From Octopus sinensis (taxonomy: Eukaryota): a stretch of 64,000 nt of DNA. The notes under the pieces are model-generated. The model did no database searches. It was given only the letters and a program-made list of their open reading frames with translations, and was not told where the DNA came from. The stretch covers positions 51,584,001 through 51,648,000 of the forward strand of contig NC_043008.1 of NCBI RefSeq assembly GCF_006345805.1, in the 5' to 3' direction. The translations under genes and the position numbers were made by a program. Positions 511 to 38,030 of this stretch are shown here, piece by piece; position 1 is the first letter of the stretch; the number at the start of each line of letters is the position of its first letter.

Positions 511-604
511 GTCAAGCTGAAGAATATGGAAACTTCCAACACATATTCTTGTATTTATGTTCTTAAACAAAGTATTCCTTACCATGAGTGTTCATTGATA
601 AATA
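511..604 (+). CDS. Gene A exon (second half of extracellular repeat module; phase 0->1), VKLKNMETSNTYSCIYVLKQSIPYHECSLIN
   Basis: Acceptor ttttgctttag|, donor ata|gtaagt. 94 bp open in phase 0. Same length, phases and T/Y/C/V/K/C/N positions as exon 8077-8170. Confidence 0.8.
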
Positions 605-825
605 GTAAGTTGATAAAACATATTTCTTATATCACTTTATTAGAAATTAGGAAATAGTTCTGCTTTGCTGGCTTTTATCAGATGTTATTAAGAAGGAGAG
701 TGATCAAGGTGAATTCTAAATGACTCATGCTGCTGCATTGATATTACTATTAAGAGTTAAATCTTCCTATCACCCACACCAATTTCCAAAGCCATACTAC
801 ATTCATGGTAATATTTCCTTGGTAG

Positions 826-990
826 TATGTGGCAAGCTGGCAGAATTGGGCAAAATGCTTAGCAGCATTTTGTCTGTCATTATGTTCAGAGTTCAAATTC
901 TACCAAGGTTGACTTTGCCTTTCATCCTTTTGGAGTCAATAAAATAAGTACCTGTTGAGAACTGTAGGTCAATGTAATTGACTTATTTCC
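826..990 (+). mobile_element. Degenerate tRNA-derived SINE (same family as 54682-54920)
   Basis: gagttcaaattc B-box-like motif followed by the shared gactttgcctttcatcctttt..aaaataagtacc core. Confidence 0.65.
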
Positions 991-1027
991 TCTTCTGAAC
1001 TTGCTCTTGAAACCAATATTCCCTTGA

Positions 1028-1570
1028 TAGTGTGATAAAAATATTGCTTCCCAACTACATGATTCCAGGTCAATCCCACAGTATGGTTCCTTGGGCAAGT
1101 GTCTTCTACTATAACTCAGGCAGACCAAAGCCTTGTGAGTGGATTTGGTTGACACAAACTGAAAGAAGCCCATTTTGTAAAAATATATATATGTGTGCTA
1201 ACACGGAAAACGGATGTTAAACAATGATGATTATGATCATGATATATATATAAATATATCTAGTCCAATCCATGCTAACATGGAAAATGGACACTAAATG
1301 ATGATAATCATGATGTTGATCATATGTGTGTGTGTGTATGTGTGTGCACACGTGTGCACATCTGCTTCTTTTTGTTCCCCACCACTATTTGACAACTGAT
1401 GTCAGGGTGTTTACATTCCCGTGACTTAGCGGTTTGGCAAAAGAAACTTATCAAATCAGTACTAGGCTTTTAAAAAGTGAAGTACTGAAGATGATTCGTG
1501 CAACTAAAATTCTACAAGGTGTTGCCCCAGCATGGCCAAAGTCTAATGTCTGATACAAGTAAAAAATAGA
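1028..1570 (+). mobile_element. Bipartite SINE-like dispersed repeat (second family)
   Basis: The gcttcccaactacatg...gggcaagtgtcttctactata...aagccttgtgagtggatttgg block recurs at 13345-13745 (+), 26520-26610 (+) and ~63000-63405 (-). Confidence 0.6.
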
Positions 1571-2039
1571 AGATATAAATAGTATGAAAGATTGACATAT
1601 TTTACATCAGATTTGAAATGAAGGAACCAATTGTATGATGGTGGTGCTCATTTATGATCATTTCTCAGACAAGGAGACACAAGCACCCCTGCCACACTCA
1701 CACACACTCATATGACATCCTTCTTTCATTTTCTGTTTACTAAATCTACTCTCAAGTCTTTGTTGGTCAGAGATTATAGTAGAAGACATGTGCTTAAGGT
1801 GCCTTCCTCAAATCTGAACTTGGAATGCTTAAGTTCAAAAGTCAAAACTTCTGATGAATAATAATATTATATTAGGTAATATTGACCAACGCTATTCTGG
1901 TTACATCCCTGTGGCCAGAGTAGTGAGTTGGCAAATTGCCCCCAGAGCTGAAAGAAGCATGGCTAATGACAGCCATAATGTACAACATGAATGAAGAGGC
2001 CAAGTTACTGGAGGCCACAAGGACCCAAAGTATAAACTA

Positions 2040-2830
2040 CTGGGGATATGGGATTGAGTTAACCATCCAAGCAACAGTGGAAGACTTAAACTGAATTGTT
2101 GGAGAGATAGTGCAGCCCGATGACTTTAGATTGAGAGTGGTGGTGGAGGGCAGGCCACCTATATGTTTTACATGTGAGGAAAAAGACCACATGAAGGCAA
2201 GGTGTCCCCAAAGAGAACAACAAATAGAGCAGACGGAGAGGCAGGAGAGCACAGACCAGGTGGTACAGGTCGAGATAAAGGAGAAAGCAACGGAGGAGGA
2301 ATTCACAGTGGTAAAAAAAAAGTAAGAGAAATGCGAGAGTGAGCTCATCGCCATAGCAGCAGAAAAAGAAGTAGTGGGAAAGGAGGAGACCAAAAGGAAG
2401 GAAGACGAAATGGTGGTGGAAAGAGAAAGCAAAAAGAAATTTGAAAATGTGTTCGAGGAGGAACTGAATAAAGAAGAGACATTGGTGAAGACACCGGTTG
2501 TTCCCAGGGAGGGAGAAGATTTTGAAACGCAACTGCAGAGACCGAGGAGAGTGGATGGAGAAAAGAAGGTCCTAGGACTGGAATGGGAAAAGAGAAAACA
2601 AACAAGAAAAGGAAGATTTCGATTAAATTTTGTGACATTCGTGAAAAGCAAAGAAACTGAAAAGAAAGTTTTAAAATTTAAACATGTCATAAAAGTGAAA
2701 TTACCCACAGATGTGTATACCAAGAATGTGAAGCCCATCATGGTTGACAAAGACACAACAGACTAAAAGACATGTGTTGAAGCAGGATTGACCCGCCAGG
2801 AGTGTTGGTGGTGTTCGACGAATTGCCACC
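2040..2830 (+). mobile_element. Non-LTR retrotransposon ORF1 (gag-like) remnant with CCHC zinc knuckle
   Basis: CFTCEEKDHMKARC (C-x2-C-x4-H-x4-C) in ORF 2110..2325, then a charged low-complexity region; disrupted by stops. Confidence 0.65.
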
Positions 2831-3089
2831 AGTAGTGGAGCTAAAAGATTTAAAACCTTTCATGAGGCATTAAAAAGGAAAAAAAGTAAATTGTTTTGTT
2901 GCAAAAAAGGAAAAAAGTAAAATTGTTTCATTTAAAAAAAAAAAGAGGAAAAAACGATGATTAAGAAAAAACAATAAGAAAATAGAACGATTGTAAATAG
3001 TTTATATAAACGTTCAAATAGTACTGCATGGGAATGGGGCTCATGCAGCCATTTCATTTTTCATTTTCATATAACATCTCATTTTCATT

Positions 3090-4350
3090 TGTTTAATGTT
3101 TTTGTTTTTGTCCCCACAGTGGTGTTGTGTCTATCTTTGTAGTGTCCCCTCTGTGTTGTGGCCGTAGTGCCAAAATAAAGAAAGAGAGAGCATTTTGGTA
3201 GTCTTGCAAAGTATGTCATGTGAACACATTGATTAAACCTCCGCTAATTTATCTATACCAACCTGTGGTAGGATATAAAAGTGGCAAAGAGATATTTTAA
3301 GCTTGCGTAGAAAGTTTAATTTTTTTTATGAAACCAAGGAAAAAAGTCATTAACATGGAAAATTTGTTGGCTAATGTGGTGCAGCTGCAACAGCAACAAC
3401 AGCAGTTACAACAACAACTATAACAACAGCATCAATACCTGACAGCATAGAAACTTCAATTGGAGAATTTATTTATAACCCAGAAGAAAGTATTTTTCTT
3501 CATATTGTCAAAGATACAAAGAAATCTTCAAAGAAGAATGTAAGAATTATAATGACGAGAAGGTGCGACTACTTTAAAAAAAGTTATCGCCTGCTGAACA
3601 CAAAAAATATTGTAACTATATTCTGCCAAACAAATCAGGTAAGATTTGTTTCTATGAAACAGCTAATTTGTTAATGAGAATTATCTGTGAAAGAAGTTCC
3701 CTGTTCAATATTCATTAGCAATATTTAAATTTAGTTAAAAAATATGATGAAGATTTCGTCACCAATGTTGGGATCATTAAAAGAGTGTGAAAAATTCAAA
3801 TTAAATGAATTAATGCCAGATTTGTTCAAATGTCTAATTTTTGTTCAAGGGTTAACAGCAAGAAAAGATGCTGATATACGTTTCCGTATATTAACAAAAT
3901 TAGAACAGGACCAAAAATTAACTCTACAAGCAGTGGCTGAAGAATGCCAGAGGATTATCAATTTAAGGCATGGCGTAGATAAAATTGAAGAAAAAGATTG
4001 CTCTCAGATACATGTGTGTCATCCTGAAACAGATAAAAAAAGAAAAACGAACATCCAGGCCAAATCCATGCTATGGTTGCAGAGGTTTACGTTTTAAAAG
4101 TAATTGTCCTTTTAAAAATTGTAAATGTTTTGATTGTTGAAAAATCGGACATAAAAAGCTCCCACTGTATAGTGAAACAAGCAAAAATTCTAGAAAGAAT
4201 GGACTGTTAAATGAAATTCTAAGAGAGGCTCAGAAAAGAAAATTTGTGTCCATAAAAATGAATAATATGAATATCAAGTTACAATTGGATACAATTGGAT
4301 ACGGGTTATGATATCACGATAATCAATACAGATACATGGAGTAAAATAGG
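3090..4350 (+). mobile_element. Ty3/Gypsy-like LTR retrotransposon 5' remnant (LTR end, PBS-like TGG, gag, protease start)
   Basis: ...gagagca at 3192 followed by tggtagtc. Gag-like FKCLIFVQGL...LTLQAVAEECQRI, degenerate Cys knuckles ~4070-4165 and aspartyl-protease LQLDTG-DITII near 4280-4325. Many stops and frameshifts. Confidence 0.75.
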
Positions 4351-4611
4351 GAACACATTGATTAAACCTCCACTACATAATTTATCTATACCAACCTGTG
4401 GCAGGATATAAAATATCTCAACAGAAATATGGTAACAAAATGGTTAACAAAAAGGGAAGAAAATCAGTCATCTTCTCTTGAATAATAATTCAGATTTCAA
4501 AATGTCAAGTAATTCACGATTTTTTCACAGCACATTTCTTTTTTTTTTTATGTTTCACAAGTACTATACCATCTTTTTATTGCTTTTTTCATTTTCTTCT
4601 TTCATCTCTAG

Positions 4612-4844
4612 ATACTGTGTGGAAAATAGAACTAACCTTTCAATCGAAACTAATTGGAAATATAGAAGAAATGAAAATATTTTTTAGAATGACTGGTAGT
4701 GAAACAAACACTTTACAAGCTCTAACATTAAAAAAATTAGCTTATCTCCCCACATTTTCTGCTTTTATCAATATTGGAAATATAAGCATGGATGAAGTTG
4801 AAATATCCTTTGAAAATAATAACAAAGCTATTGACATATCTAAA
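4612..4844 (+). CDS. Gene A exon (first half of repeat module; phase 1->0), TVWKIELTFQSKLIG...NNNKAIDISK
   Basis: Long polypyrimidine tract ending catctctag|, donor aaa|gtaaga. 233 bp. Coincides with ORF 4617..4892. Phases match both neighbouring exons. Confidence 0.85.
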
Positions 4845-5184
4845 GTAAGAATTTTTACTTTTTTAAATTTCGTATTTCCTTTTTTATTTTAATTATTTAT
4901 TTACTTATTTATTGTAATCATTGCTATTATTAATGCTGTTGTTAAAGTCTTGATCAGCATTCACTGATAAAACCTAAGGGTCAAAGATATTCTAGGCATG
5001 GCCATCAAGTTGTTTTATGAGCTGCATAAACCTACAATCTTTATTCAGTCAGCCTTAAAGGAAATTTGGTACCTATTTCCAGCAAGTTGACTAATCCCAT
5101 ACAACCTTCCTTCATTCACTGGGGCTATTTTATATGTATCAATGTGTGTATGTTTCTGTGTGTGTGCATATAGATTAACAGATA

Positions 5185-5203
5185 GATAGACACACAGACA
5201 GAC

Positions 5204-5259
<56 letters not shown>

Positions 5260-5284
5260 GGATGGATGGATGGATGGATGGATG

Positions 5285-5366
<82 letters not shown>

Positions 5367-5400
5367 CAGCTAGATAGATAGATAGATAGATAGATAGATA
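5185..5400. repeat. (TAGA)n/(TGGA)n microsatellite
   Basis: Direct reading. Confidence 0.95.
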
Positions 5401-5744
5401 CACACACATATATAGGTTTCAAATGGAAAGAGGTTGCTCTTTCAACAGGGATGCATTTCATCCAAGCATACACTGGTTTAGCCCTATATCAATTAATTTC
5501 CCTGTAACTTGTTAATTTGTGTTAGTATTGGTGTTTATTGATGGTTCTTCTTCGACATCAGTACTTAACACTTATGAAGTTCCAGTTGCCATTATAGATG
5601 CTTTCATCTATCCAATACAGGAGAACAGAATTTTAAAAATATAATATAAAGAAAATGGAGAGTGTAAACACAGAAAAAATTAGTTTATTTACAAAATAGT
5701 CAATTTCATATCATCTATGCACGTTTCAATTCCTAACTTCATTT

Positions 5745-7610
5745 CATCATCATCATCATCATCGATTAACGTCCGTTTTCCATGCTGGCATGGGTTAGAC
5801 GGTTTCTCTGAGGTCTGGAGAACCAACGACTGCACCAGGCTCCAATCTAGTCAAGCAGAGTTTCTGCAGCTGTCCTTCCTAACGCCAACCACTCTGAGAC
5901 TGTAGTAGGTCCTTTTTATGTGCCACCAGCACAGGAGCTAGTCAGGAGGACCTGGCAACAATCATGTTTGGATGGTGCTTTTTACATGCCACCGGCACAG
6001 GAGCCAGTCAGTGGGTACTAGCATCGGCCATGTTCTGTTGGTGCTTTTTACGTGCTGTTGGCATGGGAGCCAGTCAGGCGGACCTGGCATTGACCACGTT
6101 CAGATGGTGCTTTTTATGTGCCACTAGCACAGGAGCCAGTCAGGGGGCACCGGCCCCAGCTATGATATTGGTTTTACTTGACTTAAGAGGTCTTCTCAAG
6201 CATATCATTTCACTCGATGCATCAGGAGTATTCTTAACAGGGATGGATGTGTGTGGTTGTGATCTCACTTTAGTTGCTGGGTTTTCTCAATCACAGCATA
6301 TCTACAAAGGTCCCGGTCTTCTGTCATTGCTTCTGTGAGGCCCAATGTTCAAAGGTCATTCTTCACCACCTCGTGCCATGTCATCATGGGTCTACCTCTT
6401 CCACAGGTTCCTTCTACAGTTAGGGAGTGGCACCTCCTCACACAGCTGTCTTCATTCATACGTAACATATCAGCATAGTCACCTCTCTTGCATACCACAT
6501 TTGATGCTTCTTATGCCCAACTTTTCTCTCAGGGTGCTTATACTTTGTCATGTATGCACACTGACACTACACATTCAGCAGATCATACTAGCTTCATTTC
6601 TTTCAAGCCTACGCATATCCTCAGTATTCATGGCCCATGTTTTACTGCCATGTAGCATGGCAGTTCGCACACATGCATCATACAGTCTACCTTTCACCCT
6701 GATTGAGAGGCCCTTAGTTGCTTGCAGAGGTAGGAGCTCCTTGAACTTTGCCCAAGCTATTCTTATTCTAGTCGCTACACTCTCAGAGTAACCACTCCCA
6801 CTACAGACTTGGTCGCCTAGGTAACAGAAACTATTAACTACTTCTAGTTTCTTCCCCTGTCACCACACACAAAATCTATTTTCCCAGTTAACCTTCCTTT
6901 GATATTACTGCATCTCATATGCATCCATAGCTAACATCTGGTACATCATATGGGGTTTCTACCCATGCCTTTTCTACAGATCATGCAGGGCCATCTTCCT
7001 GAAGCGGGTTGTGATTTTACAGCCTTCCTACTTACTAAGACTTTGGTTTTGGCTAGGTTAATCCTAAGGCCCTTTGATTCTAGACCTTGCTTCCACACCC
7101 TAAATTTCGTTTCCAGTTCTGTCAGTGACTCAGCTATTAGAGCAAGGTCATCAGCATTGGGGAGCTCCCAGGGGCAGCCTGTCTTGAATTCCTCTGTTAT
7201 TGCCTAGCGGACTATAATGAATAAGAGGACTGATCCTTGGTGAACCCCTACTTCTACCCAGAATTCTTCACTATACTCGTTGCCAACCCTCACCTTACTG
7301 ACAGCTTGTACAGCCCTTACTAGCCACTCACCTATCCCCAGTTTCTGCATTGACCACCAGATAAGGGATCGGGAGACCCTGTCAAAGGATTTCTCCAAGT
7401 CAACAAAAGCCAAGTACAAAGTGAGCTATGACCCTCTCTGTAACTTTCATCACCTGATCCAGTAATTTGATACCCCTGTAGTTATTTCTATCTGAAGCAT
7501 CACCTTTTCCCTTGTAGCAGTTGACTATGGTGCTGCTACACGAGTCATTGGGTATGACTCCTTCATGAACTACCTAATTTATGATGCAGGTGACAAGACC
7601 ATAACCCACA
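5745..7610 (-). mobile_element. 5'-truncated RTE-clade LINE (RT C-terminal part, 3'UTR, (GAT)n tail)
   Basis: LAFVDLEKSFDRV and GVHQGSVL RT motifs (ORF 7204..7419). Decayed RTE C-terminus at 6345-6790. The 3'UTR carries ~55-bp subrepeats and ends in (gat)n. Confidence 0.85.
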
Positions 7611-8076
7611 CTGCCTGATATCTAGATTTTACAATTAAATAGCATTATAAATATAAAGGGTAGAAATCAATATATTTAACTTCTACTTATTTAATTGAGA
7701 TAATTTCAATTTTTATTGTAATTTCTTATTTAATTAGATGTATTAATCTTATCTGTTGATAGTTTGGGTTAATATACATATATATATTTAGATACATTTT
7801 TATGTATTATAATGGGGGAACGATTTACTCTGTATCATATGGAGTTAGATTATTTTCAAATTGTGAATTACTCACACATGCACACAAACACACTAAAAGA
7901 CATTTTTTTCTGAGTTTATATTTCAAGCAAAAATTGACTGTCAGAATAGGTGAAAAATATTGATCATAATACACTCATAGAGGCAACAACTACCCTACTA
8001 TCAGTGTAGACATTTGTGTTAATTTAAAAATGTAATAAAACTTATCAGCTAACAATTTTCTTCTATAATTTTTCAG

Positions 8077-8170
8077 ATTGTCATGACAAGAATACTTACT
8101 GGAGAAGAATATGGTTGTGTTAACGTACACAAGACAAATTCTAATGAATATTCTTGTAAATTCCTAAACA
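8077..8170 (+). CDS. Gene A exon (second half of repeat module; phase 0->1), IVMTRILTGEEYGCVNVHKTNSNEYSCKFLN
   Basis: Acceptor tttttcag|, donor aca|gtaaga. 94 bp; homologous to 511-604. Confidence 0.85.
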
Positions 8171-8664
8171 GTAAGATTTCATTGAACACCTAAACCAAAC
8201 TCATGTAGTCTCTCTAATGGGTACAGCTATTACAAGGGAGTTAATTATTACAAGCAGAGTTAGAAATTTGAAATTAAAATTAAGGAAACTAAAAGAAAAG
8301 ATGCATAGAATTCACATATTTATTATTTTGTTTATTTAATACAAATTTCTTAAAATTTTGAGTCATTGGTAATCATGGATAGCACTATTACATTTCTTTG
8401 ATAAATAATCAGTATGGTATGATGTCACATAAAGAACTTACTCAAGAGAATCTTGGGATAGTTTCTGTATAATCAATGAAAACACTTAGCAAATATAATA
8501 GAGGTCTCTAGCAAGTCTCTTAATGAATTAAAGCTCCAAGTAAGGAGTTGATAATCTGTCAAATATTAGGGGTGAATTTTAAGTGAATATGAACCTATGG
8601 ATTCCATCTGTACTGTAAAACAAAAATAGAAGCAATGAATGTTTTACAAATCCACAGGTATTAT

Positions 8665-9400
8665 CATCATTTAATGTTTGTCTTCCATGCTGGCGTGGGT
8701 TGAACAGCTTGACAGGAGCTGGCTGGGTAAAAGGCTACACTAGGCTATTGTGACTGTGTGGCATAGGCATGGGTTTTATGGTTGGATGCCCTTCCTAACA
8801 CCAACTACCCCATAGAGTAGATTGAGTGCTTTTTATGTGACTCTAGCACAGGCAAGGTTAGTTTTGGCATGGCTTTTACAGCTGGATGCTCTTCTAAATG
8901 CCAACCACTTTACAGTGTGGACTGGATGCTTTTTACATGGCACCAGCACTGGCAGGGTCACCAAGTAACTTGCAAGACAAAGATCCTTTAAGAGTGGAGG
9001 CGCATTGGAGGAGGGGATCTTGAGCCAGATGATGAAAGGTTATAGTGTGACAGGGAGGCAGAAACAGGTGTCTTGCTATAGAGGAGGTACATAGTTACCT
9101 AGCCAAGAGAGAGAGAGAGAGTGTGAGAGACTGCAAGAGTGCAAGAAGATGATGCATAGGTCTTAGTGTATACACACACACACACACACACACACATGTA
9201 TCATCATCAACAGCAGCAGCAGCATCATAATCATCTTCATCATTTATCATCCACTGGCATGGGTTGGATGGTTTAACAGGATCTGATGGGACCAAGGACT
9301 CCAGTATCTTTTTTGGCATGGTTTCTATGGCTGGATATCTTTCTTAATGCCAACCACTTCACAATGCATAGTGATTGTTCTTTTTATGGTACCTGTGCTG
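8665..9400 (-). mobile_element. Two RTE 3'UTR-type fragments
   Basis: catcatcat-adjacent ccatgctggc(a/g)tgggtt...ggatgcccttcctaac blocks matching 5750-6200. Confidence 0.65.
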
Positions 9401-10499
9401 GTGGCAAACTTTGTGAAATTTGAAAGCAGGTGAAATTTCTCTAAGTTCATGTTAGACAGGATCAGATGCACTGGGGTATCAGCAGGATATGCAAGCAACT
9501 TGAAACAAAGCTCTAGAATACTGAGTCAGATTGTTAGAAGTAGCTATAAAGTTTTGCCATCTAAGCTAAGTAACATACAAAGAACTGAACCTACGCTAGT
9601 GTCATAAGAGCTAAGATTAGATGAGGGGGTCAAAGATATTTCAAGAACAGCTCTTTAAGCATTTAAGTACAACAATGTTCAGCTTAGGGCTGAAGCAAAA
9701 GACATCTGTCCAAAGTGCCACATGGTGAGATTGAACCTAATGTCATGATTCCAAACCAAACTTGTTAATGACACAGCCATGTCTGCATCTATTAATTAGA
9801 TCAATTAATATGTCATTATATTAATTGTATATCCATTTTGCATTAATGCCTATTTTACAACAGAAATTACTGTTGTCACACATTCTTGAATGACAGTTCA
9901 CTGTTAACACTTTTCTTACAATATTTTCATTAAAATTCACTACTTTGCTTTCAACTTATTTTGAAAATGAATTAATTAATGAATAATTTTATTGGAAGGT
10001 TTTAATTTAGATCACTTTAAAGCTGGAATTTTGAGTCACAGAATGAGGGGTGATATTAAGTTGGTATCAAAATAGTTCAGCAGGTAGTTGAAGTACACTG
10101 CTTTAGTTTTGTGAGTGAAGTGTACATATTAAGAGATTCAACAGACTGAAGCGATCAACAATCCCAACAAGTTCAGGTGGTTTGCTGCAATCTGAGCCAT
10201 TGAACACTTTACAGGTCTAAAAATATTTGTGTGTGTGAGTGTGTGTGAGTGTGTGAGTGTGTGTATGTGCATGTGTGAGTGCCTGTGTGCATGAGTGTGT
10301 GTGCGAGAGGAGAGGGAGAGTTAACAATTGCCTGGTAAGGAGGTAATCGATCTGGCTTATGTGCCCACCATACTGATAAGTGATTATGAAGAGGAAATGT
10401 GGGGAAGAGAAGAAAAACACTTTGGGAGAGAAGTGGGGAATGTAGATTGGTTTGCTGGAGTAGGGTGTGTGAAAGTTTTATTGCGGGACACAATGCTTC

Positions 10500-11560
10500 T
10501 AGAACTCAGGTTCGCTGACATGGGCAGGTCTTCTTTAGAACCTCATATCGCCAGACATCTGTGTCCAGTGTCATTTCCTCTGTGAATCCCAGCATCCTGA
10601 GATCAATCCTCACCACTTCATCTTATGTTTTACTGGGTCTCCCTTTTCCACAGGTGCCATCCACTTTCAGTGACTGGCACTTCTTTGTAAGGCTGTCTTC
10701 ATTCATACATATCACATGTCCAGACCAATGTAGTCTCTTGCATACTGTACTTGATTCCTCTTATGCCCAACTTTTCTCTCAATGTATTTGCAATTTGTCA
10801 TTCATGCACATCTGGTGGAACATACTTCTTTTGTTTCTCTCTAGTCTATGCATGTCCTCTACAATCAGAGCCCATGGAATGTAACTGTTCATACTCAAGC
10901 ATCATACAATCTACCTTTCACTTTCAGAGAGAGTCCTTTGTGTCCAACAGAGGTAGTAGCTCTCTGAACTTTCTCCATCCCATTCATATTCTAGAAACAA
11001 TACTTTCAGAGCATCCGTTCCCATTGTTGATTTGGTCACCTAAGTAACAGAAATTATCTACTACCTTGAGAGAGCCTCCTGAACATTTGAGAGAGACTGA
11101 ATTTGGTGTGCTCTTAGTGCTTATTGTTCCTGCACATCTGCCACACACAAAGTTGACCTTAGCAGTTAATCTACCCCTGATTCCACTGCATCTCTTATGT
11201 GTCCATAGTCTACTTCCTACTCCTTTCCTACAGATTACGCTGGGCCTTTTACCTGGTGGAATTAGAGGCTTATTTGCTTTCTTGCTAACAATACCTTTGA
11301 TCTTAGCTAGCTTGATTTTAAGGCCCTTTGTTCCAGGTTTTGCTCCCATACCTGGAATTTCTTCTCCATTTCTACTATGGATTCTGCAATAAGGGCGAGG
11401 TCATCAGCATAAAGTAGTTCCCATGGGGATCCAGTTATGGCCTGGAGGACTTTGATGAATAGGATTGGGCTGAGAACTGAACTTTGGCGAGCCTCTACTT
11501 GTACACTAAAGTCATCACTGTATTCATGGCCAACTCACACCTTATTGACAACATCACTGT
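10500..11560 (-). mobile_element. RTE-clade LINE fragment (RT C-terminal region)
   Basis: VVDNFCYLGDQI...GCSESIVSRI plus a Cys/His segment CRKGVG..WTHKRCSGI..CGRC (ORF 10984..11349). Similar to 6350-7300. Confidence 0.8.
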
Positions 11561-12707
11561 ACATGGCTTGTTGATATATATATATATATATATATTATTT
11601 TACACACACATAAATATGAACATGCATTTTATGTGGGACTAGCACCTGTAAAGGATAACAGCAAATTTACTTAACTTGATGTTTCACATCAAGTACAGCA
11701 AATCGCCACAATTCCTATTCCCTTGTCATTTCTTCAATGAGGTTCAGGATCTGAAGACCCTTTCTCACCACTTTTTCCCACGTCTTCATAGGTCTACTCC
11801 TCCTCCAGGTTCCCTCTACTATGAGCTCAGCACTTCTTAATGCAGCTGGCCTCATCCATATGCATCATGTGACTAACCAGCACAGTCTTCTCTTTTGCAT
11901 ACATCTGGTGCATTTTATACCCAGCTTTCTTCTTATACATTTCAGTTGTACTGAAGGATAAAGCTGGTTTGAGTTCCAATGTATGTGTGCGTGTAGATAA
12001 AGGAAGAAACAGAAAACCAGGAGGATTAGATGTGATGATTTATTCAAACCTTTGAAGAGCATTGACACGACAAAGCTGTTAAGATACATCTTGAAATATA
12101 GTATCAGCAAATATATACAATGAGTCTCATGCAGTTGGTACATGAAGTATATATCTATATATGTGTATGTGATGTAGAAAAAGAAAACAAATATGTGACA
12201 TGACTTCTGCCAGAAGACAAGAACAGATGTACATGTCAAAGAATACTTGTGGGAATAAACTAGCTGTTGACCCCTTGTGAGAAACCAATTGGTAAAATTG
12301 GCCATGATGGATAAATAATACTGTACTTTCATTAATACCATATATATATATATATATATATATATATGCTGTTTTGCAAACAACTTGCACATGCAAGTGC
12401 TACCAGTCAAAAGTTCTGCATACTGGAAGCCAGCAAGTGTGTGGGGTCATCAAAAGAGAATGTGTGCTGTTTCAGGGCTTACTTCTCAATGGCACCATTG
12501 CATCCTCACTGATATGAGGCACTCCGCTTACTAGATCAACTGATTATCAAATAAACCTCAATATTCTTCTTGCCAACGCTCATCATCTCTTTTTAACCAA
12601 ATCCAGTGGAGTTCAATGATAATATTCTCAGTTCAATGATAATGTTTTTATGTATTTCAGAGATATTTTTGTCAATTTGTAATTAAAATTTATTCTTCAC
12701 TTTCTAG

Positions 12708-12755
12708 AGAAAGAAGAACTGCAATCAAATGAATCATATCTCCTCATAAAAATAG
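12708..12755 (+). CDS. Gene A stalk exon (phase 1->1), KKEELQSNESYLLIKI
   Basis: Acceptor cttcactttctag|, donor tag|gtaatt. 48 bp, keeps frame, contains an NES sequon. Confidence 0.7.
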
Positions 12756-12781
12756 GTAATTATCTATTTCTTTCGTTAAAC

Positions 12782-12831
<50 letters not shown>

Positions 12832-14072
12832 GATTGACAGTTTGATAACAGCCCCAAAAATGTGTGAATGAGATTAACCCCTTTTGTTACTATATTTTTA
12901 TTCAATTATTCTTCATCTATTTTAATTAATTTTGAAAGTAAAGAAGAATTTAGAGTAATAAATTTATCATTAAGCTAGTATTTGGGAATTTAAAAACTGC
13001 AGCTAGAATGTCTGAATGAAAGACAAGGGAGTTAAGCGAGGTTTTCAAATTTAATACATTAACTTTCCCACCCCAAAATATTTAATTAACTCTTAAAATC
13101 ATATGGAAAATTTTCCAAGTCAAAAGCACAGTTTTCTAATGATTCTGAGATAAAACAAAGCTAAATGATAGAAGAAGGGATTAGGGTTTTCCCTCCTTAC
13201 ATCAGACAGTTCCCTACTGCCCTCCAAATGAATCTAAACAAAGTTTGTACATTTCCTTATGGTACTGGGTCATCGTACAGGTAGTTAAGAGATAAAATTA
13301 CACTGACTATGAAAAGAAAACTCATAAGTATGAAAAATCATTACGTGCAGGTGTGCTTGTTTGGTAAAAAGCTTGCTTCCCAACTACATGGTTCTGAGTT
13401 CAGTCCTACTTCATTGCACCATGAGCAAGTATCTTCTACTATAGCTTCAGGCTGACTAAAACCTTGTGAGTGGATTTGGTAAACAGAAACTAAAAAGCTT
13501 GTTATATATACATATATATGTATCACTGTGTGTCTTTGTGTCTGTTTCTCTCCTCTCTCACAGCTTGACAACTGGTGTTGATGCGTTTACGTCCCAGTAA
13601 CTTAGCAGTTTGGGAAAAGAGATTGATAGAATAAGTACCAAAATTTTAAAGAAAATACTGCAGTCAATTCATTCAACAAAAATTATTCAAGCCAGTGCCC
13701 CAGTATGGCCACAGTCTAATGACTGAAACAAGTAAAAGAAAAAAAAGACAATAATTAACAATAATCCTTGTCAAAAACTTCAACATTCAAACTATTTTAA
13801 AACAATGTAATTGTGCAGGAGGGAGTGTGTGCAGTCTGGTAAGAACAAATATTACTGTATTTTACTGGGGAGTTTTTTTAACAATCTTTATCTTGGAAGT
13901 GTCTTGATTCTGACACCAATTCTCACTTAAGCTAATAAATTTTCTTTTAATTACATTAGTAACTTTGAATGGAGAATTATTTGTTTTCAATTATTACATT
14001 AAGTATATTAGCAGAGACTTAAGCATACATAAAATATTGTTTGATTGAATATCTTATTCATTTTTTCTTTAG

Positions 14073-14127
14073 TTGTTGGTCCCCTTGTAGTCCTTATATT
14101 ATGCTTGATCATGATTTTCATTGTCAG
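14073..14127 (+). CDS. Gene A transmembrane exon (phase 1->2), VVGPLVVLILCLIMIFIVR
   Basis: Acceptor ttttttctttag|, donor cag|gtaaaa. Uninterrupted hydrophobic stretch. Exon and flanking intron are homologous to 63746-63788 (-). Confidence 0.88.
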
Positions 14128-14339
14128 GTAAAATCATATAATATTATTCTTTACTCTCAATTTATTTCCTACTTATTTTTGCATGTGCATGCACATATGT
14201 GTACATACATACACACACAGCACGCACACACACACACACACACATACACATATGGATATATATTTTTTTCTTTATCTTTTAGTTTCACCTCAAAGCTGCG
14301 GCCATGCTGTGGTACCAACGTTTTGCTACACTGTTATCA

Positions 14340-15045
14340 TTGAGAGCTTCCTCTAGTATGTAGTATTTGTTGAATAAGGGAGTTTCATGTTACTAATCTC
14401 ATTAGCAGCTCTTGCTGCAAGGTAGGTTCATCTGGGACTCTCAATAGAAAGAGGTCCAGTTTTGATTTGAAAACACCTACATCCTCTTTGTGTAGGTCCC
14501 TCAGGCTCCTTGGGAGAATATTAAAAATCTGTGGGCCTCTGAAACCCAGGCTGTTGCAGTAACTGGTCCTGAAGTGCGATGGCATTGCGGCGATCTTTGG
14601 TACTGTGCAGTGTTGACCCATTCTGGCACTGGTGTAGCTTTGAATGCCAAAATTTGGCACACTTCCTTCCAGGATCTTCCAGATATATATTACTGCATAC
14701 CTCTCCTGTCTTCACTCTAGGGAGTAGAGTCTTAGCTGTTTCAGCCTTTCCCTGTAGCTGAGCTCTTGCAATAAGACAATCTTCTTTGTCAAAAGCTTTC
14801 GCAAAATCAAGGTGTATTACATCCATGTTTGAGTTGTTGAGTAACTGCCTCAACAGCCAGTCACAATGTTGTAAGAGCTGGGTCAGGCAGCTCCTACCTG
14901 GTTGAAAGCCATGCTGAGTATCACTCAGCAAACTATCTTCTTCAAGGAATGTGATTAGTTTCCCCTCTGACTATCCGTTCCATGACTTTGTTGATGTGTG
15001 AAGTCAGATAGATAGGCCTATAGTTTTTGGCATCTGCTCTGCTTC

Positions 15046-15089
<44 letters not shown>

Positions 15090-15419
15090 TATATACTATA
15101 TATATATATATACATATATACGTATATACATACATATATATATGTACGTCTTCTTGAAAATTTTAGTTGCTTCTATGCTTAATTTAGGCAACATGTTCTT
15201 TGTCTATCTCCTTAACTCCTTGAGATTTTAGGTATAATTGTACTAATGTGTCCATCTGTTCTAATTTAATTTTATGTCTTTGTGCAGCTGAATATTGCTC
15301 AACATTTTAAATTGATGTAATGATTGCTTTGTTCAATTAAATGGAATTGCATGAAATGGTGAACTGCATTACCTCTGGATATCCTTGTTGCTTATTTTGA
15401 TTTATATGGATATATATAT

Positions 15420-15481
<62 letters not shown>

Positions 15482-15577
15482 ATAGATAGATAGATAGATA
15501 GATAGATAGATGGATGGATAGATGGATGGATGATGGTTGGATGGATGGATGGATGGTTGGATGGATGGATATATATT

Positions 15578-15621
<44 letters not shown>

Positions 15622-15632
15622 GTATATAAAAG

Positions 15633-15711
<79 letters not shown>

Positions 15712-16900
15712 TATATATATAATCCTTAAATCTTTAAAAATGTTTCAACCCAAAAGCTGCGGTCATGCCTGTGTTCTGGAGGTGTAGTGAATACACTTTG
15801 GAACTGTTCGTCCAGTATTTCACTTATCCTCATGGGATTTCCTGTGAGGGAACGATCTTTTTGGAAGAGAGGTCCTATCCTCTGGCATACTGCAACTGTC
15901 TCTTTGGCAAACTTAAAGAAGGCTTTAGGGTTTGACTTGATATTTTCTATAACCCAAGCCTCTTTATCTGCTCTCTCCTTTTCATGAGACTGATGCAGAC
16001 TTTTCTCAATTTCCATTTGCATTCTCTCGAGGTGAGACTTCTCGCCACTTTTGGTGTGCTTGCTCAGGCAGTCTGCAATCCTTCTCCGTCATCTCATAAG
16101 AATCTTCCTTTCCCTAGGGATCCTGTTTTTGTGTTTGCTGGCCCTGCACACTGGGACATATTTGTCACATATGGCTTGTATTATGGACATGAAACGTTTG
16201 TGTTTCACGTCAATGTTTGGTGTGGAAAGGCATTTAGGCCAATCCTGTTTGAGGATCTCTTTCTCAATCAACTTCCAATTAGCTTTATGAAAGTTTAGTT
16301 TGGAGAGATTGTGGATGCTTCATATAGGCTGTGTGTCTGTGGGGGCTTTTGGTCCATACATAGACAGCTCTATTATGTTGTGATCCGAGACCAATGTTGG
16401 CATCACTTTAACATTATGGATAATGTCCATATTGTTTGTGAATCAGAGATCCAGTATATTATTTTCCCTGGTTGGTTGCAACACAATTTACTCCATGAAA
16501 GAGACATTTGTGAGGTTGAGCAGGGACTCCACCTGTGCTTGCTGATGGTGTGTCATCCCTAGGAGCATCTGCTCCCCAGGCCATTCCACATTGGGGAAGT
16601 TAAAGTCACCCAGGAAGAATACACTGTTGTGTTGTTCCAGTTTGGTGAGAACTTCTATTTTTGTTAGTCAGTCTTCAAACATGCCTGTGTGATTTGGGGC
16701 ATCCGGTGGGCGATATGTAGTACATATGATGATATTCAGTTGTCTTATGTGTACAATTTGAGTGTCACACACTGAGTTTGAATATGACAATAGGACCTTG
16801 GGCATGAGGTCATCTCGGATGTACACTGCAACTCCACCATGACTCCTCTCTTTTCTATCTGAGTGTATGACAACATATAGCGGTATGTTTATTTCTGCAT
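14340..16900 (-). mobile_element. CR1-group LINE ORF2 remnant (APE, RT and C-terminus) split by a microsatellite-flanked insert at ~15047-15725
   Basis: QHGFQPGRSCLTQLL...DVIHLDFAKAFDK (ORF 14521..14931), SLGFRGPQIFNILP...FKSKLDLFL, and YRPP / LGDFNFP endonuclease motifs at ~16600-16730. Confidence 0.8.
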
Positions 16901-17734
16901 ATATATATAATTATATAAAAAATACATAATGGGACTAGAACACAAGACATCCACACAGTTTGGTGATACAAAAAGGGTACACTAAATCTTGTACGACTTT
17001 ATTCTTTCCTTCTGTCTATCAGCCCTTTCACGCATACTTCGTTCATTCCACACTTCGTTCTTTCGTTCCCCCTCTCTCACATTTTCTTGACTTCTGTTCA
17101 TGCTCACTTTCCTTCCTCTTTCACTTCACTGTGTCCCTGTCATTCTTCTCCTCTCCCTTTCACTGTTCCCTCTCTCTTACTCCTCCTCCTCCTCGACTCT
17201 CTCGTCACTGATACGTGATCAGAGGGAAGCCATCTTTCGAACTGCTATCTTCACCAAGACAAGACCGCTTATCCTGTCTCTCTCATAATAAGCTGTCTCC
17301 TCAAACGTTCAGAATAATTTTTCCAATGTCTTGGCTTAACAGCCCTCATCATTTGTTTTTACTGAGTTATTCTCTTTGTTCTGTCTTTTACTGTTTTTAC
17401 TGTCGTCTTGTTTTGTTCTTACTCTCCTGCTCATGTTACCACTTTTACCCCTCTGCAAAAAATCCCAAATTTTATTTAATTTGCTTTGCGGGAAGGACTG
17501 TTTCAACAAAGTTGCATCTTGTCCTTGCCTTCGAACACAGAGTAGGCAAAACAGGGACAACTGAAGAAGGGGAATATTCCTTGTGTTGTATGTCTTGTAC
17601 TCTATTATTTTGTTTTTTGAAAAATAGTTTGTTTCCATGTTTTTATTTTTATGTTTTCGTTTCTCATTGTGTACAATGTTTTTTTTTGATGTTTTGTACC
17701 CATATATGCATGTATATATACATATAGATGTAGG

Positions 17735-18018
17735 TATGTAGGTATGGATATATATATATATATATATATATGGATATATATATATATATATGGATATATA
17801 TATATATGGATATATATATATATATGGATATATATATATATATGGATATATATATATGTATATATATATATATTATATAAATGGCGGTGCCCCAGCATGG
17901 CCACAGCTCATTAGCTGAAACTAGAAAAATCAAAAATCAAAAAAATCACATATATATGTATATATATATGTATATATATATATGTATATCTATATATATA
18001 TATATATATATGTATATC

Positions 18019-18051
<33 letters not shown>

Positions 18052-18135
18052 GTATATCTATATATATATATATATGTATATCTATATATATATATATATA
18101 TATATATATCTATATATATATATGTATATCTATAT
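17735..18135. repeat. Compound (TA)n microsatellite blocks
   Basis: Direct reading; source of several spurious YIYI ORFs. Confidence 0.9.
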
Positions 18136-18220
18136 AATAATAAATATTAGGGAATAAATCCAAATTTACAGGGAAAAAATCAGATTTAGGATTAAATCCA
18201 ATTTTATAGTAAAATATTAT

Positions 18221-18417
18221 ATAATATTAATTCGAGACAAAACCACTATTTTGCAAATCAAACAAGGAAAGACTTAATCAATACATAAAAAAATTTAATA
18301 TAAAGTAAATAAATAAATAAAGTAAATATTTACTTTATATTAAAATTTTTTATGTATTGATTAAGTCTTTCCTTGTTTGATTTGCAAAATAGTGGTTTTG
18401 TCTCGAATTAATATTAT
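18221..18417. repeat. Near-perfect inverted repeat, 90-bp arms (18221-18310 / 18328-18417)
   Basis: ataatattaattcgagacaaaacc...aaagtaaat versus its reverse complement. Confidence 0.9.
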
Positions 18418-18594
18418 GTATATCTATATATATATATATATGTATATCTATATATATATATATATGTATATCTATATCTATATCTATATCTATATAACGG
18501 GAAGCTTTATGAAAATAAACAAAAGACGAAGGCAGGTGGAAAACAAACGAACAATTGTATTAGTATGGCGCTCAGGAAATATAAATAAAACAAG

Positions 18595-18632
18595 TCTTTA
18601 ACGTTTCGAGCCTACGCTCTTCAACAGAAAGA
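18595..18632 (-). ncRNA. Minimal type-I hammerhead-like motif (variant core CUGUUGA)
   Basis: tcttt-CTGTTGA-a-gagc(gtag)gctc-GAAA-c-GTT-aaaga. Stems I and II pair; the conserved A6 is replaced by U. Confidence 0.5.
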
Positions 18633-18999
18633 TACACAGAGAGAGAAAAACACAGAAAGAAGAAGAGAAAAAAAATGCGTGCAGTAGCTAACGAATCAAC
18701 ATGGCTCTGCAAGACAAATGTCGTGTTTTCAAAAGTTCTAAATCAAAATCTTCCACCAAACCTTAGTCACAATTTATAGTACATACATACATATCCTTTT
18801 ACTGAGTGTCAAGCTAATACATTCCCTGAGTATGTCTTCTTATCTGTTATTGTTAATTTTTAATATTAATCATTTATTTGAATTGACTATCTATATCTAT
18901 CTATATACCTATCTACCTATCTATATATCTATCAATCTATCTATTTATATAAATGTGTGTCTGTGTGCCTCTCTGTGTGTGTGTGTGTGTGTGGATATA

Positions 19000-19032
<33 letters not shown>

Positions 19033-19044
19033 TGTCTATTGCAG

Positions 19045-19315
19045 AAAGAAAGTGTTCAGAAACAGTGTAAACAGAGGTAACACATCAAAACTTCAAGATG
19101 TAAATGAAAATCATTATTACTCCATGCAAAATACTACTCCAGTTTGTATCAGCAAACGCAATCAAGAATTACCATCTTCACAGCTTAAATCTCAAGATCT
19201 TGTTGAAGATGGATATTGCTGTATGAAAAATCCCAGTTCAGTTTACATCAATAAACCCACACAACAACCATTCTATTCAGATCTAGAAATCCATATATAT
19301 GAAGAACTTGCATAA
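19045..19315 (+). CDS. Gene A terminal exon: cytoplasmic tail RKKVFRNSV...FYSDLEIHIYEELA*
   Basis: Acceptor tgtctattgcag| in phase 2, in frame with ORF 18953..19315. Basic juxtamembrane residues. Homologous to 55096-55390 (-), including the start of the 3'UTR. Confidence 0.88.
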
Positions 19316-21819: not shown

Positions 21820-21919
21820 NNNNNNNNNNNNNNNNNNNNNNNNNNNNNNNNNNNNNNNNNNNNNNNNNNNNNNNNNNNNNNNNNNNNNNNNNNNNNNNNN
21901 NNNNNNNNNNNNNNNNNNN
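21820..21919. other. Assembly gap (100 N, probably unsized)
   Basis: Exactly 100 N next to a minisatellite. Confidence 0.98.
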
Positions 21920-23300
21920 CACACAGCCACTCCTGCACCTACTGCCACACAGCCACTCCTGCACCTACTGCCACACAGCCACTCCTGCACCTACTGCCAC
22001 ACAGCCACTCCTGCACCTACTGCCCACAGTCCACCTCCTGCACCTACTGTCACACAGCCACTCCTGCACCTACTGCCACACAGCCACTCCTGCACCTACT
22101 GGCACACAGCCACTCCTGCACCTACTGCCACACAGCCACTCCTGCACCTACTCCCACACAGCCACTCCTGCACCTACTGCCACACAGCCACTCCTGCACC
22201 TACTGTCACACAGCCACTCCTGCACCTACTGCCACACAGCCACTCCTGCACCTACTGCCACACAGCCACTCCTGCACCTACTGCCACACAGCCACTCCTG
22301 CACCTACTGCCACACAGCCACTCCTGCACCTACTGCCACACAGCCACTCCTGCACCTACTGCCACACAGCCACTCCTGCACCTACTGCCACACAGCCACT
22401 CCTGCACCTACTCCCACACAGCCACTCCTGCACCTACTGCCACACAGCCACTCCTGCACCTACTGCCACACAGCCACTCCTGCACCTACTGCTGCCACAC
22501 GTCCACTCCACCTGCACCTACTGCCACACAGCCACTCCTGCACCTACTGCCACACAGCCACTCCTGCACCTACTCTGCCACACAGCCACTCCTGCACCTA
22601 CTGCCACACAGCCACTCCTGCACCTACTGCCACACAGCCACTCCTGCACCTACTGCCACACAGCCACTCCTGCACCTACTGCCACACAGCCACTCCTGCA
22701 CCTACTGTCACACAGCCACTCCTGCACCTACTGCCACACAGCCACTCCTGCACCTACTGCCACACAGCCACTCCTCCTGCACCTACTGTCACACAGCCAC
22801 TCCTGCACCTACTGCCACACAGCCACTCCTGCACCTACTGCCACACAGCCACTCCTGCACCTACTGCCACACAGCCACTCCTGCACCTACTGTCACACAG
22901 CCACTCCTGCACCTACTGCCACACGTCCACTCCTGCACCTACTGCCACACAGCCACTCCTGCACCTACTGCCACACAGCCACTCCTGCACCTACTGCCAC
23001 ACAGCCACTCCTGCACCTACTGCCACACAGCCACTCCTGCACCTACTGCCACACAGCCACTCCTGCACCTACTGCCACACAGCCACTCCTGCACCTACTG
23101 CCACACAGCCACTCCTGCACCTACTGCCACACAGCCACTCCTGCACCTATTGCCACATGTCCACTCCTGTGCCTATTGCCACACGTCCACTCCTGTGCCT
23201 ATTGTCACACAGCTACTCCTGCACCTATTGCCACATGTCCACTCCTGTGCCTATTGCCACACAGCCATTCCTGTGCCTATTGCCACACGTCCACTCCTGC
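21920..23300. repeat. 26-bp GC-rich minisatellite (ACACAGCCACTCCTGCACCTACTGCC), ~53 copies
   Basis: Direct reading. The 26-aa translated repeat equals three units. Units diverge toward 23140-23300. Confidence 0.95.
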
Positions 23301-24337
23301 AACTTCAACTTGAAATTATTACTCTATTCTAAATCATAAATTCATATAGAACTGAATGTAGAAACAGAGGTAGTGATGGAGACTGGTAGACGTAATATGT
23401 CTACATTTGGGTCTCTTCCCTATTATATCCCCTTTTGAGTCTACACAAGCTGTCTACCCTGCCTCTTGATATACCATCTCACCTCTTTATCAGCTCTATA
23501 CCACTTATCTGTCCATCACTCACTCCCTGTTCACCATCCATCTCTTCTGATCACTCTGCTATGGTGTATGCATAACTAAGGATAACAGTGAATCCCTCAT
23601 TTTCTCTATACCAAGCAACCAATGTAGGGATGTTAATGGACTTGTCTTTCAGATACCCTTTCTCCTTATCTGTGTCATTCTGCCTGTATTATGAAAGATG
23701 ACACTGGAACTGTCTGTTCTCTATCCTGCCTACAACCATCCCATCCTGCTTTCCTTCCTAAAGAAACAGTCAACATTCCTTCTCTCTCCTCTCTTCAACC
23801 ACCCCTCACTTCATTTTCCCTCTTTCTGCTATCATTCACTTGTCTCTCTTTGCAAACACGTCCTAGATTCTCCTACCATCACTCAATCTGTCATTCTCCC
23901 TCTTTGTCGCATTGCATTAAGAGAAGAGACATGGCATGAACTGGGAAATCTCACAAGTTTTTGTCTTGTGATAAAATGCAACCAGTGTATGCTTTAATTG
24001 GATTAGTAATTGATTGAAGATAGCATAGGGTCAAGAAAACCTGTTGGTCTTATGAAGAACAGGAGAGCCACCCTCTCACCAGTACCATGCATGTGTATGT
24101 CTGTGTAACTGATTGCATTCTACATTGAGGTGACTCAGAGATGGTGAGGTTTGTTGACATTTCTCAGTCAAGGTTGTCCAGTAGCTCTGCACTTTCAAAG
24201 ACAAGCGGAATGAAATCTCTCTCTCACTTAAACACATGTAAGGGTTAGTAACAAGAAGAACACCCAATTTTAAAGCAATGACTTGGTAATATGTATTCAT
24301 CAAACTGATGCTAAAATGAGAAACAAATGTAAAACTA

Positions 24338-37436: not shown

Positions 37437-38030
37437 TTACAGAACTTCAGTATACACAATATGTTTAATATTTTTCTTTGAAGTATATATGAAGAGTTTG
37501 TGTGGGCTTCCTATTCTGGAACAATCTACATACAATTGACAATGTGAGAAACAACCCTCTTCTTGATGGAGACCAACAACCTGCAGTATTTCACACTGGG
37601 ACTTGTTTATGGTCAATGCATAACTGACTCCCACTGGGAATTGCAATTGTTTGAAATGAAAGGGGACATCTGTTGGTATTAGTGGTATTCTAGGTATAAA
37701 TACAGAGTCTCCCTTACCACATCCAGTGAGGATGTTTGCTTCAATATTTTGAGGCTGTAGTTCAATCACACCCATACATGTACCATTGCATAATCTTGGC
37801 TGATCCAGGTTTCTGAGAAGCATGATGACTGTGCCCTTCTTTAATTCTAGCTTGTGCAGTGAAATACCAGATGGTTTCAGACTGTTGAGGAATTCAACAA
37901 GATAATGAACAGCATCATCCTCACCGACAACTTTGTTGATAGATTCATAGATGTGGCTATCTCCAGGTATCATTTGTAAAAGATTTTTGATGGTGGCATT
38001 TACTGTAATGTTTTTTGGGGCTAGGATCAC
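37437..38030 (-). mobile_element. Helitron RepHel PIF1-like helicase C-terminal fragment
   Basis: EFLNSLKPSG..HKLELKKG..MLLRNL...CNGT, IPRIPL, QFPV..SYALTINKSQ and FSH.QLYV..SR motifs, several of them degenerate. Confidence 0.9.

Follow-up and report, generated by a model that had tools for sequence, protein, structure and literature searches.

What is encoded between positions 511 and 19315 of a 64,000-nucleotide stretch of the Octopus sinensis genome (contig NC_043008.1, positions 51,584,001 to 51,648,000; hereafter, the window)? A first-pass annotation, made from the letters alone, read this interval as a hidden six-exon gene for a single-pass signalling receptor whose extracellular part repeats a two-exon module of possible PLAT/LH2-like fold. 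We find that the interval is exons 5-10 of LOC115217915, a real gene that is already annotated, and the explanation that we favour, as somewhat more probable than all else taken together, is that it specifies a type-I membrane protein from an octopod-restricted multigene family, with PLAT-like modules that bind ligand and a tail that signals through phosphotyrosine. Although the gene was already in the databases, its structural reading, as a member of an octopod-only family with a tandem PLAT-like ectodomain and tyrosine-motif tails, appears to be new as far as we have checked.

Joined end to end, the six segments form 795 nt with one stop codon, which is terminal, and yield a product of 264 aa; all six are preceded by an AG acceptor, all except the last are followed by a GT donor, and the phases run 0/1, 1/0, 0/1, 1/1, 1/2 and 2/stop, exactly as first annotated. 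Random frames of the window are free of stops in only 5% of cases at 233 nt and 4% at 271 nt. In a search of 5.8 billion proteins, the 264-aa product matched residues 185-448 of XP_029643494.1 (448 aa; P0001 in our alignments, in which other proteins are numbered likewise) at 100% identity and 100% coverage, and this record is labelled "uncharacterized protein LOC115217915 [Octopus sinensis]". The LOC115217915 locus on CM016870.1 (GCA_006345805.1) overlaps the window by 29,315 bases with 0 mismatches, which locates the window at approximately 51,584,001-51,648,000 on that chromosome, and a brute-force splice map rebuilds the full 448-aa protein exactly from ten coding exons. Because the product is identical to a database protein and the chromosome match is exact, the six-exon model is not a chance chain of open reading frames (ORFs). 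The gene is, however, neither hidden nor limited to six exons: it is annotated with ten, and its start lies 20 kb upstream of the window.

The exons follow the parts of the protein. Exons 1-4, which sit 3.2 to 20 kb before the first base of the window, encode the signal peptide (exon 1, 55 nt), a domain that we call D0 (exons 2 and 3, 206 and 85 nt) and the first half of domain D1 (exon 4, 206 nt). Within the window, all on the plus strand, exon 5 (511-604; 94 nt, phase 0 to 1, aa 185-215) supplies the C-terminal third of D1; exon 6 (4612-4844; 233 nt, phase 1 to 0, aa 216-293) encodes the first five strands of domain D2 and the beginning of the sixth; and exon 7 (8077-8170; 94 nt, phase 0 to 1, aa 294-324) encodes strands 6-8 of D2. 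They are followed by a short stalk next to the membrane, which contains the sequon NES (exon 8, 12708-12755; 48 nt, phase 1 to 1), the transmembrane helix IVVGPLVVLILCLIMIFIV (exon 9, 14073-14127; 55 nt, phase 1 to 2) and a cytoplasmic tail of 90 aa (exon 10, 19045-19315; 271 nt with the stop).

Several features of the protein agree with a type-I, single-pass topology. The N-terminus, encoded upstream of the window, is a hydrophobic leader, MLFLSCWSILVFICLNFAIYFADIQA; the most hydrophobic segment of the chain is at residues 340-358 (Kyte-Doolittle 19-residue mean of 3.36) and is followed directly by RKK, the positive flank expected on the inner side of a membrane. A full-length AlphaFold2 model, built on an alignment of 17 family sequences, places helices at residues 2-24 and 333-366, shows an all-beta ectodomain (predicted local distance difference test, pLDDT, mostly 70-90) and a disordered tail, and is of low confidence at residues 326-334. 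The ectodomain holds an even number of cysteines, eight (C34, C62, C103, C107, C198, C211, C307 and C320), among which C198 and C211, in exon 5 and thus in D1, are invariant in the 17-sequence alignment, whereas C307 and C320, in exon 7, are invariant among the D2 sequences. When D2 is modelled separately, its cysteine pair falls on the last two strands (89-93 and 102-107 of that model), which are predicted probably to form a hairpin. The invariant pairs of D1 and D2 are probably disulfides, which fits an extracellular location. There are five ectodomain sequons in P0001, with NNT, NIS and NES among the exons of the window. Leader, transmembrane segment with RKK, paired cysteines and sequons together fit a glycosylated, disulfide-bonded ectodomain joined to a cytoplasmic tail; each of the parts noticed in the first reading (the three sequons, the stalk, the helix and the tyrosine-rich tail) is present.

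The ectodomain is built of repeated exon pairs, and the two-exon module that had been proposed for it is borne out by the splice map: each module has phase-1 introns at both ends and a phase-0 intron inside, the pairs measuring 206+85 nt (D0), 206+94 nt (D1) and 233+94 nt (D2). The two 94-nt exons, said at the outset to be homologous, encode peptides that are identical at 7 of 31 residues without gaps (T8, Y12, C14, V17, K19, C27 and N31); none of 100,000 shuffles equalled their ungapped BLOSUM62 score of 40 (p<1e-5). A hidden Markov model (HMM) of D2, run against all six-frame peptides of the window, finds exon 6 at E 4e-34, and its top off-target match is the 94-nt exon of D1, in register, at E 0.15. 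In the full-length model D1 and D2 have eight strands each, with those of the exon 5 region at 184-189, 195-201 and 208-214, and five residues of this exon (K188, N189, T192, C198 and C211) are invariant in the 17 sequences. Profile comparisons by hhalign among D0, D1, D2 and a further module, D3, known from paralogues, were not significant (best P 0.01-0.05; D1 against D2, P=0.05), and the claim of an internal repeat therefore rests on exon structure, on the shuffle test of the 94-nt exons and on the predicted layout of strands. Common descent of the modules is likely, and the sequence evidence for it falls short of proof.

Because the boundaries are in phase 1, adding or removing such a module leaves the frame intact, and the family varies in this respect. 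The paralogue P0009 has the extra module D3, made of a long exon (~228 nt) and a short one (~100 nt), as well as an additional D0b-like and D1a exon pair (locus L002, 4600-8780). D3 is also borne by P0005, P0006 (a 134-kb gene), P0012 and P0013. In the family alignment, D3 is missing from P0001, P0003 and P0008, and the duplicated D0b-like and D1a segment is present in P0007 and P0009. With domain HMMs and six-frame peptides, we found no relic of D3 in intron 7 of LOC115217915.

Which fold do these modules adopt? D2, encoded by window exons 6 and 7, was modelled alone by AlphaFold2 from 21 family sequences, giving eight strands with a pLDDT of 77.7 and a predicted template-modelling score (pTM) of 0.72. 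When this model was compared with the PDB by Foldseek, PLAT/LH2 domains made up all of the 26 top matches and most of the top 50, with probability 1.00 and query-normalised template-modelling (TM) scores of 0.45-0.63, and C2 domains ranked lower, at 0.24-0.40; the PLAT matches include PLRP2 (E 8.5e-4), lipoprotein lipase, 5-, 12- and 15-lipoxygenases, coral 8R-lipoxygenase and Rab6IP1. As a predicted structure, and for D2 only, the model thus fits solved PLAT domains more closely than it does other sandwiches. The full-length model gave a similar answer, in that its only short matches (~100-125 columns) above 0.9 probability were PLAT-bearing chains, namely Rab6IP1 (3cwz_B), PLRP2 and pancreatic lipase. 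Whole-chain matches of the same model (PirB/LILRB3, pilins, TbpB and others) were dropped, as their TM scores of ~0.1 reflect a beads-on-a-string likeness. We also note, as a by-eye lead only, that D1 and D2 both end in W-x-L-x-x-V-x-(L/V) followed by T-(G/S)-x-x-Y-x-C, which is like the PLAT C-terminal signature.

Several results weigh against this assignment. The Pfam PLAT model, PF01477, is unmatched at E<=1 in the 17 family members and at E<=10 in the 264-aa product and in the isolated domains D0-D3; Pfam scans of these sequences returned only sub-threshold noise driven by the transmembrane segment (7tm_1, TMEM154, Mid2). A D2 profile has 0 matches at E<=10 among all PDB sequences, and the family profile likewise finds nothing meaningful there. 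Profiles of D0-D3 aligned by hhalign to seven real PLAT sequences, recovered from PDB alignments, reached at best P=0.038 over 21 columns, although the small PLAT alignment makes this a weak test. The structure models themselves were built from shallow alignments, 17-21 sequences deep and confined to one family. By sequence, the modules are not members of PF01477. What survives of the PLAT/LH2 proposal is therefore its structural half: D2 is predicted to adopt an eight-stranded PLAT/LH2 sandwich, an assignment that covers D2 and derives from a predicted structure, and no sequence-based test detects it.

A possible alternative is that the modules are generic eight-stranded beta-sandwiches, born within octopods or derived from C2-like or Ig-like domains, and that the PLAT match reflects shared topology rather than descent or function. 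The failure of every PLAT test at the level of sequence favours this model, and the TM scores are only moderate, with root-mean-square deviations (rmsd) of 3.6-7.4 A; C2 domains do appear lower in the Foldseek list of D2, whose model comes from a shallow alignment. A generic sandwich does not readily account for a list whose 26 leading matches are all PLAT domains, drawn from four or more protein families that are unrelated, each at probability 1.00, whereas C2 domains reach TM scores of only 0.24-0.40. Nor does it account for the full-length model, which independently gave PLAT as its sole short high-probability matches, or, if the by-eye lead is admitted, for the PLAT-like pattern at the ends of D1 and D2. 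We regard the generic sandwich as improbable, but as deserving a clear minority share of belief.

The tail raises a second question, that of signalling. It consists of 90 aa, begins with RKK and holds six tyrosines, several of them in short motifs: YYSM and GYCCM (YxxM), VYINK (YxN), and FYSDL and IYEEL (YxxL). These kinds of motif recur across the family. YxN motifs of the paralogues, often in the form YxNM or YxNL, include DIYANT, EIYANM, ETYSNM and DIYENL, with DIYQNL in Argonauta and SVYINK in P0001; YxxM is represented by YYSM, YFTM and YIPM, and the C-terminal YxxL by IYEEL, VYEDL and GYWGL. YxN, YxxM and C-terminal YxxL match the consensus at which the SH2 domains of Grb2, of PI3K p85 and of Src/Syk/Shp-type proteins dock; at the level of motifs, candidate SH2-docking sites of the YxN and YxxM kinds are conserved in the tail. 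A point against this view is that a canonical immunoreceptor tyrosine-based activation or inhibition motif (ITAM or ITIM) was not found in the P0001 tail, where the spacing of YSDL-x4-YEEL is 4 and not 6-12; an ITAM-like sequence, YSDIGNTGYDNIYLEI, does occur in one Argonauta paralogue, P0029. Considered together, the motifs suggest a surface receptor that signals through phosphotyrosine. The proposal of a single-pass signalling receptor thus holds for its topology, and for signalling it is carried by the tail motifs.

These same motifs could have another meaning. If LOC115217915 were a non-signalling surface molecule, acting in adhesion or as an endocytic or scavenger receptor, the Yxx(L/M) motifs of the tail would be AP-2 sorting signals and not SH2 docking sites. 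YSDL, YEEL and YYSM, as YxxPhi motifs, suit the endocytic consensus equally well, P0001 is without a canonical ITAM or ITIM, and in lipoprotein lipase the PLAT domain serves to bind lipoproteins and GPIHBP1. But the best-conserved tail motif of the family is YxN, often YxNM or YxNL, which is a Grb2-type SH2 consensus and not a sorting signal, and several tails carry three to six tyrosine motifs, as do multi-docking receptors. We consider a purely non-signalling role unlikely, about on a par with the generic sandwich, and retain phosphotyrosine signalling as the preferred account of the tail.

How widely is this architecture distributed? A profile of 17 members recovered 29 proteins from 1.84 billion representative proteins, and XP_029643494.1 has 16 relatives at E<=1e-43. 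All members whose names were looked up belong to Octopus sinensis, O. bimaculoides, O. vulgaris or Argonauta hians. P0001 fits this family by similarity over its full length and by the invariant block KN..T.....C............C. In a tree of D1+D2, the two Argonauta copies stand apart, at least five Octopus subfamilies predate the split between O. sinensis and O. bimaculoides, and P0001 forms a lineage of its own; its O. vulgaris orthologue, CAI9731349.1 (448 aa), falls within the same 90% cluster. Several annotated members are fragments, and these, with the variation in module number, are consistent with birth-and-death evolution. Automatic labels aside, the members are called uncharacterised, and this holds for all but one label; the UniRef label of O. 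bimaculoides P0011, 'Vitellogenin domain-containing protein', looks unreliable, as Pfam finds no domain in it. Nothing relevant was found in the literature on these LOC identifiers, on octopus and PLAT, or on extracellular PLAT receptors. The statement that the architecture is unrecognised therefore stands as far as checked: it has no Pfam domain, no relevant literature was found, and all but one of the labels are uncharacterised.

Comparison with the O. vulgaris orthologue allows us to ask how this gene has evolved. The coding sequences differ at 19 nucleotides and 10 amino acids, with a ratio of non-synonymous to synonymous differences (pN/pS) of 0.34, and the ten-exon, 448-aa ORF is intact, with canonical splice sites, in both species. 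This degree of constraint must be set against the introns: with exon 5 left aside, the exons diverge at 9 of 1253 sites (0.7%), against 53 of 6004 (0.9%) in flanking intron, sampled at 600 nt per exon. Because the two species are too close, no strong constraint is visible, and constraint on LOC115217915 is only weakly demonstrated, which counts against the explanation that we favour.

Exon 5 behaves differently. Between O. sinensis (511-604) and O. vulgaris (locus L003, approximately 22480-22573), 10 of its 94 nt differ, compared with 4 of 600 in the flanking sequence (binomial p 1e-8), and 6 of its 31 amino acids differ between the orthologues. Positive selection was considered as the source of this divergence and rejected, in that synonymous changes are raised as much as non-synonymous ones (pS 0.22, pN 0.08). 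Because both rates are raised, and because four of the six differing residues in O. vulgaris agree with the P0013/P0005 subfamily, the divergence points to exon-sized gene conversion from a paralogue.

The window holds two further pieces of the family. LOC115217916 (P0025, 212 aa), at 35983-25594 on the minus strand and convergent with LOC115217915, is a truncated paralogue with exons at 35983-35929 (signal peptide), 31531-31338, 29265-29181 and 25898-25594; it codes for a signal peptide and D0 and has the first of the two D1 exons, and the last exon runs past its donor site into the intron and stops there. Family exons from the 94-nt exon onward were not found for this gene before the assembly gap, which consists of 100 N at 21820-21919, between LOC115217915 and LOC115217916. 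A third family gene, LOC115217851 (P0039, annotated at 115 aa), is represented on the minus strand by a transmembrane exon (63788-63746) and a tail exon (55390-55096); upstream exons, if any, would fall past the end of the window. This piece is 94% identical to the tail of O. vulgaris P0008, and a paralogous tail exon within the window shares 41% identity with the P0001 tail (E 1e-12). The C-terminal 17 aa of the LOC115217851 tail (TERSAGIHDSELYAEPT) are duplicated at 53004-52954, also on the minus strand and 2 kb downstream of the tail exon. Domain HMMs run over six-frame peptides revealed no more family exons in the 64-kb window. As a separate observation, the O. vulgaris protein CAI9731339.1 (P0044, 484 aa, 'ribosomal L4, mitochondrial-like') clusters at 90% with the 115-aa P0039, which suggests that it is a fused gene model whose label looks unreliable.

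The window also holds repeats and probable remnants of mobile elements. Directly after the assembly gap, at 21920-23301, is a 26-bp satellite, CACACAGCCACTCCTGCACCTACTGC, in ~53 copies with 94% matches; this stretch has a GC content of 53% and a strong skew of C over G, and all three frames of its plus strand are open. A dispersed minisatellite on the plus strand, with 63-68-bp units beginning GGTGCTTTTTACGTGCCACC, occurs at 5908-6147, 8925, 39323-39545 and 56628-56848. Its 12 unit starts share one orientation, two of them are inside introns of LOC115217915, and it is likely to be part of an octopus repeat element. Between the family genes, an ORF of 197 aa on the minus strand (37437-38030) matches the Pif1 2B helicase domain (Pfam E 2e-15) and may be the remnant of a Helitron or Pif1-like transposon, and intron 9 of LOC115217915 holds a 136-aa ORF (14521-14931, minus strand) with a weak RVT_1 match (E 0.11) and the motif HGFQPGRSC...LDFAKAFD, probably a fragment of a long interspersed nuclear element (LINE). 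Rfam and tRNA scans of the window gave no matches.

That LOC115217915 is itself a decaying or non-functional copy in a birth-and-death family, with a frame open by chance or youth and an annotation predicted for a gene without real expression, is very unlikely: the loss of module D3 from P0001, the truncated paralogue and partly annotated 3' exons of another in the same window, and exons that, exon 5 aside, are no better conserved than their flanking introns would suit such a history, but in both O. sinensis and O. vulgaris the 448-aa ORF runs intact through ten canonically spliced exons, at a pN/pS of ~0.3, all family-invariant residues are kept, along with C307 and C320, and P0008 and P0003 are likewise without D3, which makes the short form a recurring architecture.

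If LOC115217915 is a functional receptor of the kind that we favour, the chain of PLAT-like modules would bind an extracellular ligand, for which a lipid, a membrane surface or a partner protein is the likeliest candidate by analogy with the PLAT domains of secreted lipases and lipoxygenases. Clustering driven by this ligand would allow a cytoplasmic tyrosine kinase to phosphorylate the YxN, YxxM and C-terminal YxxL motifs, and the phosphorylated tail could then recruit Grb2-, p85- and Src/Syk/Shp-type SH2 adaptors. A bolder version of this reading, which we hold to be doubtful and rank slightly below the alternatives for fold and tail, is that the family forms a receptor class of the octopods' own, in which tandem extracellular PLAT-like sandwiches sense ligands of the lipid, membrane or lipoprotein type and couple to SH2-based phosphotyrosine signalling, and which diversifies by gain and loss of modules and by exon-sized gene conversion, as vertebrate immune receptors do. 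Were this class real, it would add a new type of ectodomain for immune, chemotactile or self/non-self recognition in cephalopods. Lineage-restricted genes are numerous in cephalopod genomes, and for one family of them the present analysis supplies a concrete architecture, along with hypotheses that can be tested. Should the PLAT-like assignment be true, the fold of lipases, lipoxygenases, polycystins and LOXHD1 would be seen in a new role, repeated along the ectodomain of a single-pass receptor, and octopus biology would gain a candidate surface-recognition family in which to study domain shuffling and gene conversion.

Among known systems, PLAT/LH2 domains (PF01477) are the nearest in predicted structure. 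D2 shares with them an eight-stranded sandwich of ~110 residues, its best structural matches being PLRP2 (2oxe_A), 12-lipoxygenase (8ghb; TM 0.63, rmsd 3.6 A), lipoprotein lipase (6u7m) and Rab6IP1/DENND5 (3cwz_B), and the PLAT domain of lipases is also extracellular. The octopod modules differ in having no detectable sequence similarity to these domains and in that D1 and D2 add an invariant cysteine pair on the last two strands. LOC115217915 also arranges its modules differently, as a tandem ectodomain on a single-pass protein with no enzyme or channel attached. The PLAT domain is cytoplasmic in polycystin-1, LOXHD1, lipoxygenases and Rab6IP1. The polycystin-1/REJ proteins resemble LOC115217915 as membrane proteins that join transmembrane segments to PLAT-type sandwiches; polycystin-1 has 11 transmembrane segments and a single PLAT domain, which faces the cytoplasm, whereas LOC115217915 has one such segment and its PLAT-like modules outside the cell. 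There is no sequence similarity between the two, and the Pfam domains PKD, REJ and GPS are unmatched in the octopod family.

A parallel in overall organization is with multigene immune-type surface receptors such as LILR/PirB, KIR, CD28 and DAP10. The octopod modules are not Ig-like by Foldseek, P0001 is without a canonical ITIM or ITAM, and PirB/LILRB3, the top whole-chain match of the full model, reaches a TM score of only 0.11, a beads-on-a-string resemblance only. YxNM motifs are present in CD28 and DAP10, and tyrosine-motif tails in the LILR/PirB and KIR families. Like these receptors, the octopod proteins are type-I in topology, string together beta-sandwich modules of ~100 aa with phase-1 introns at the module boundaries, and carry YxN(M), YxxM and YxxL in their tails. 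Their genes, too, form a clustered family specific to one lineage, in which the number of modules varies, some copies are truncated and gene conversion has probably occurred.

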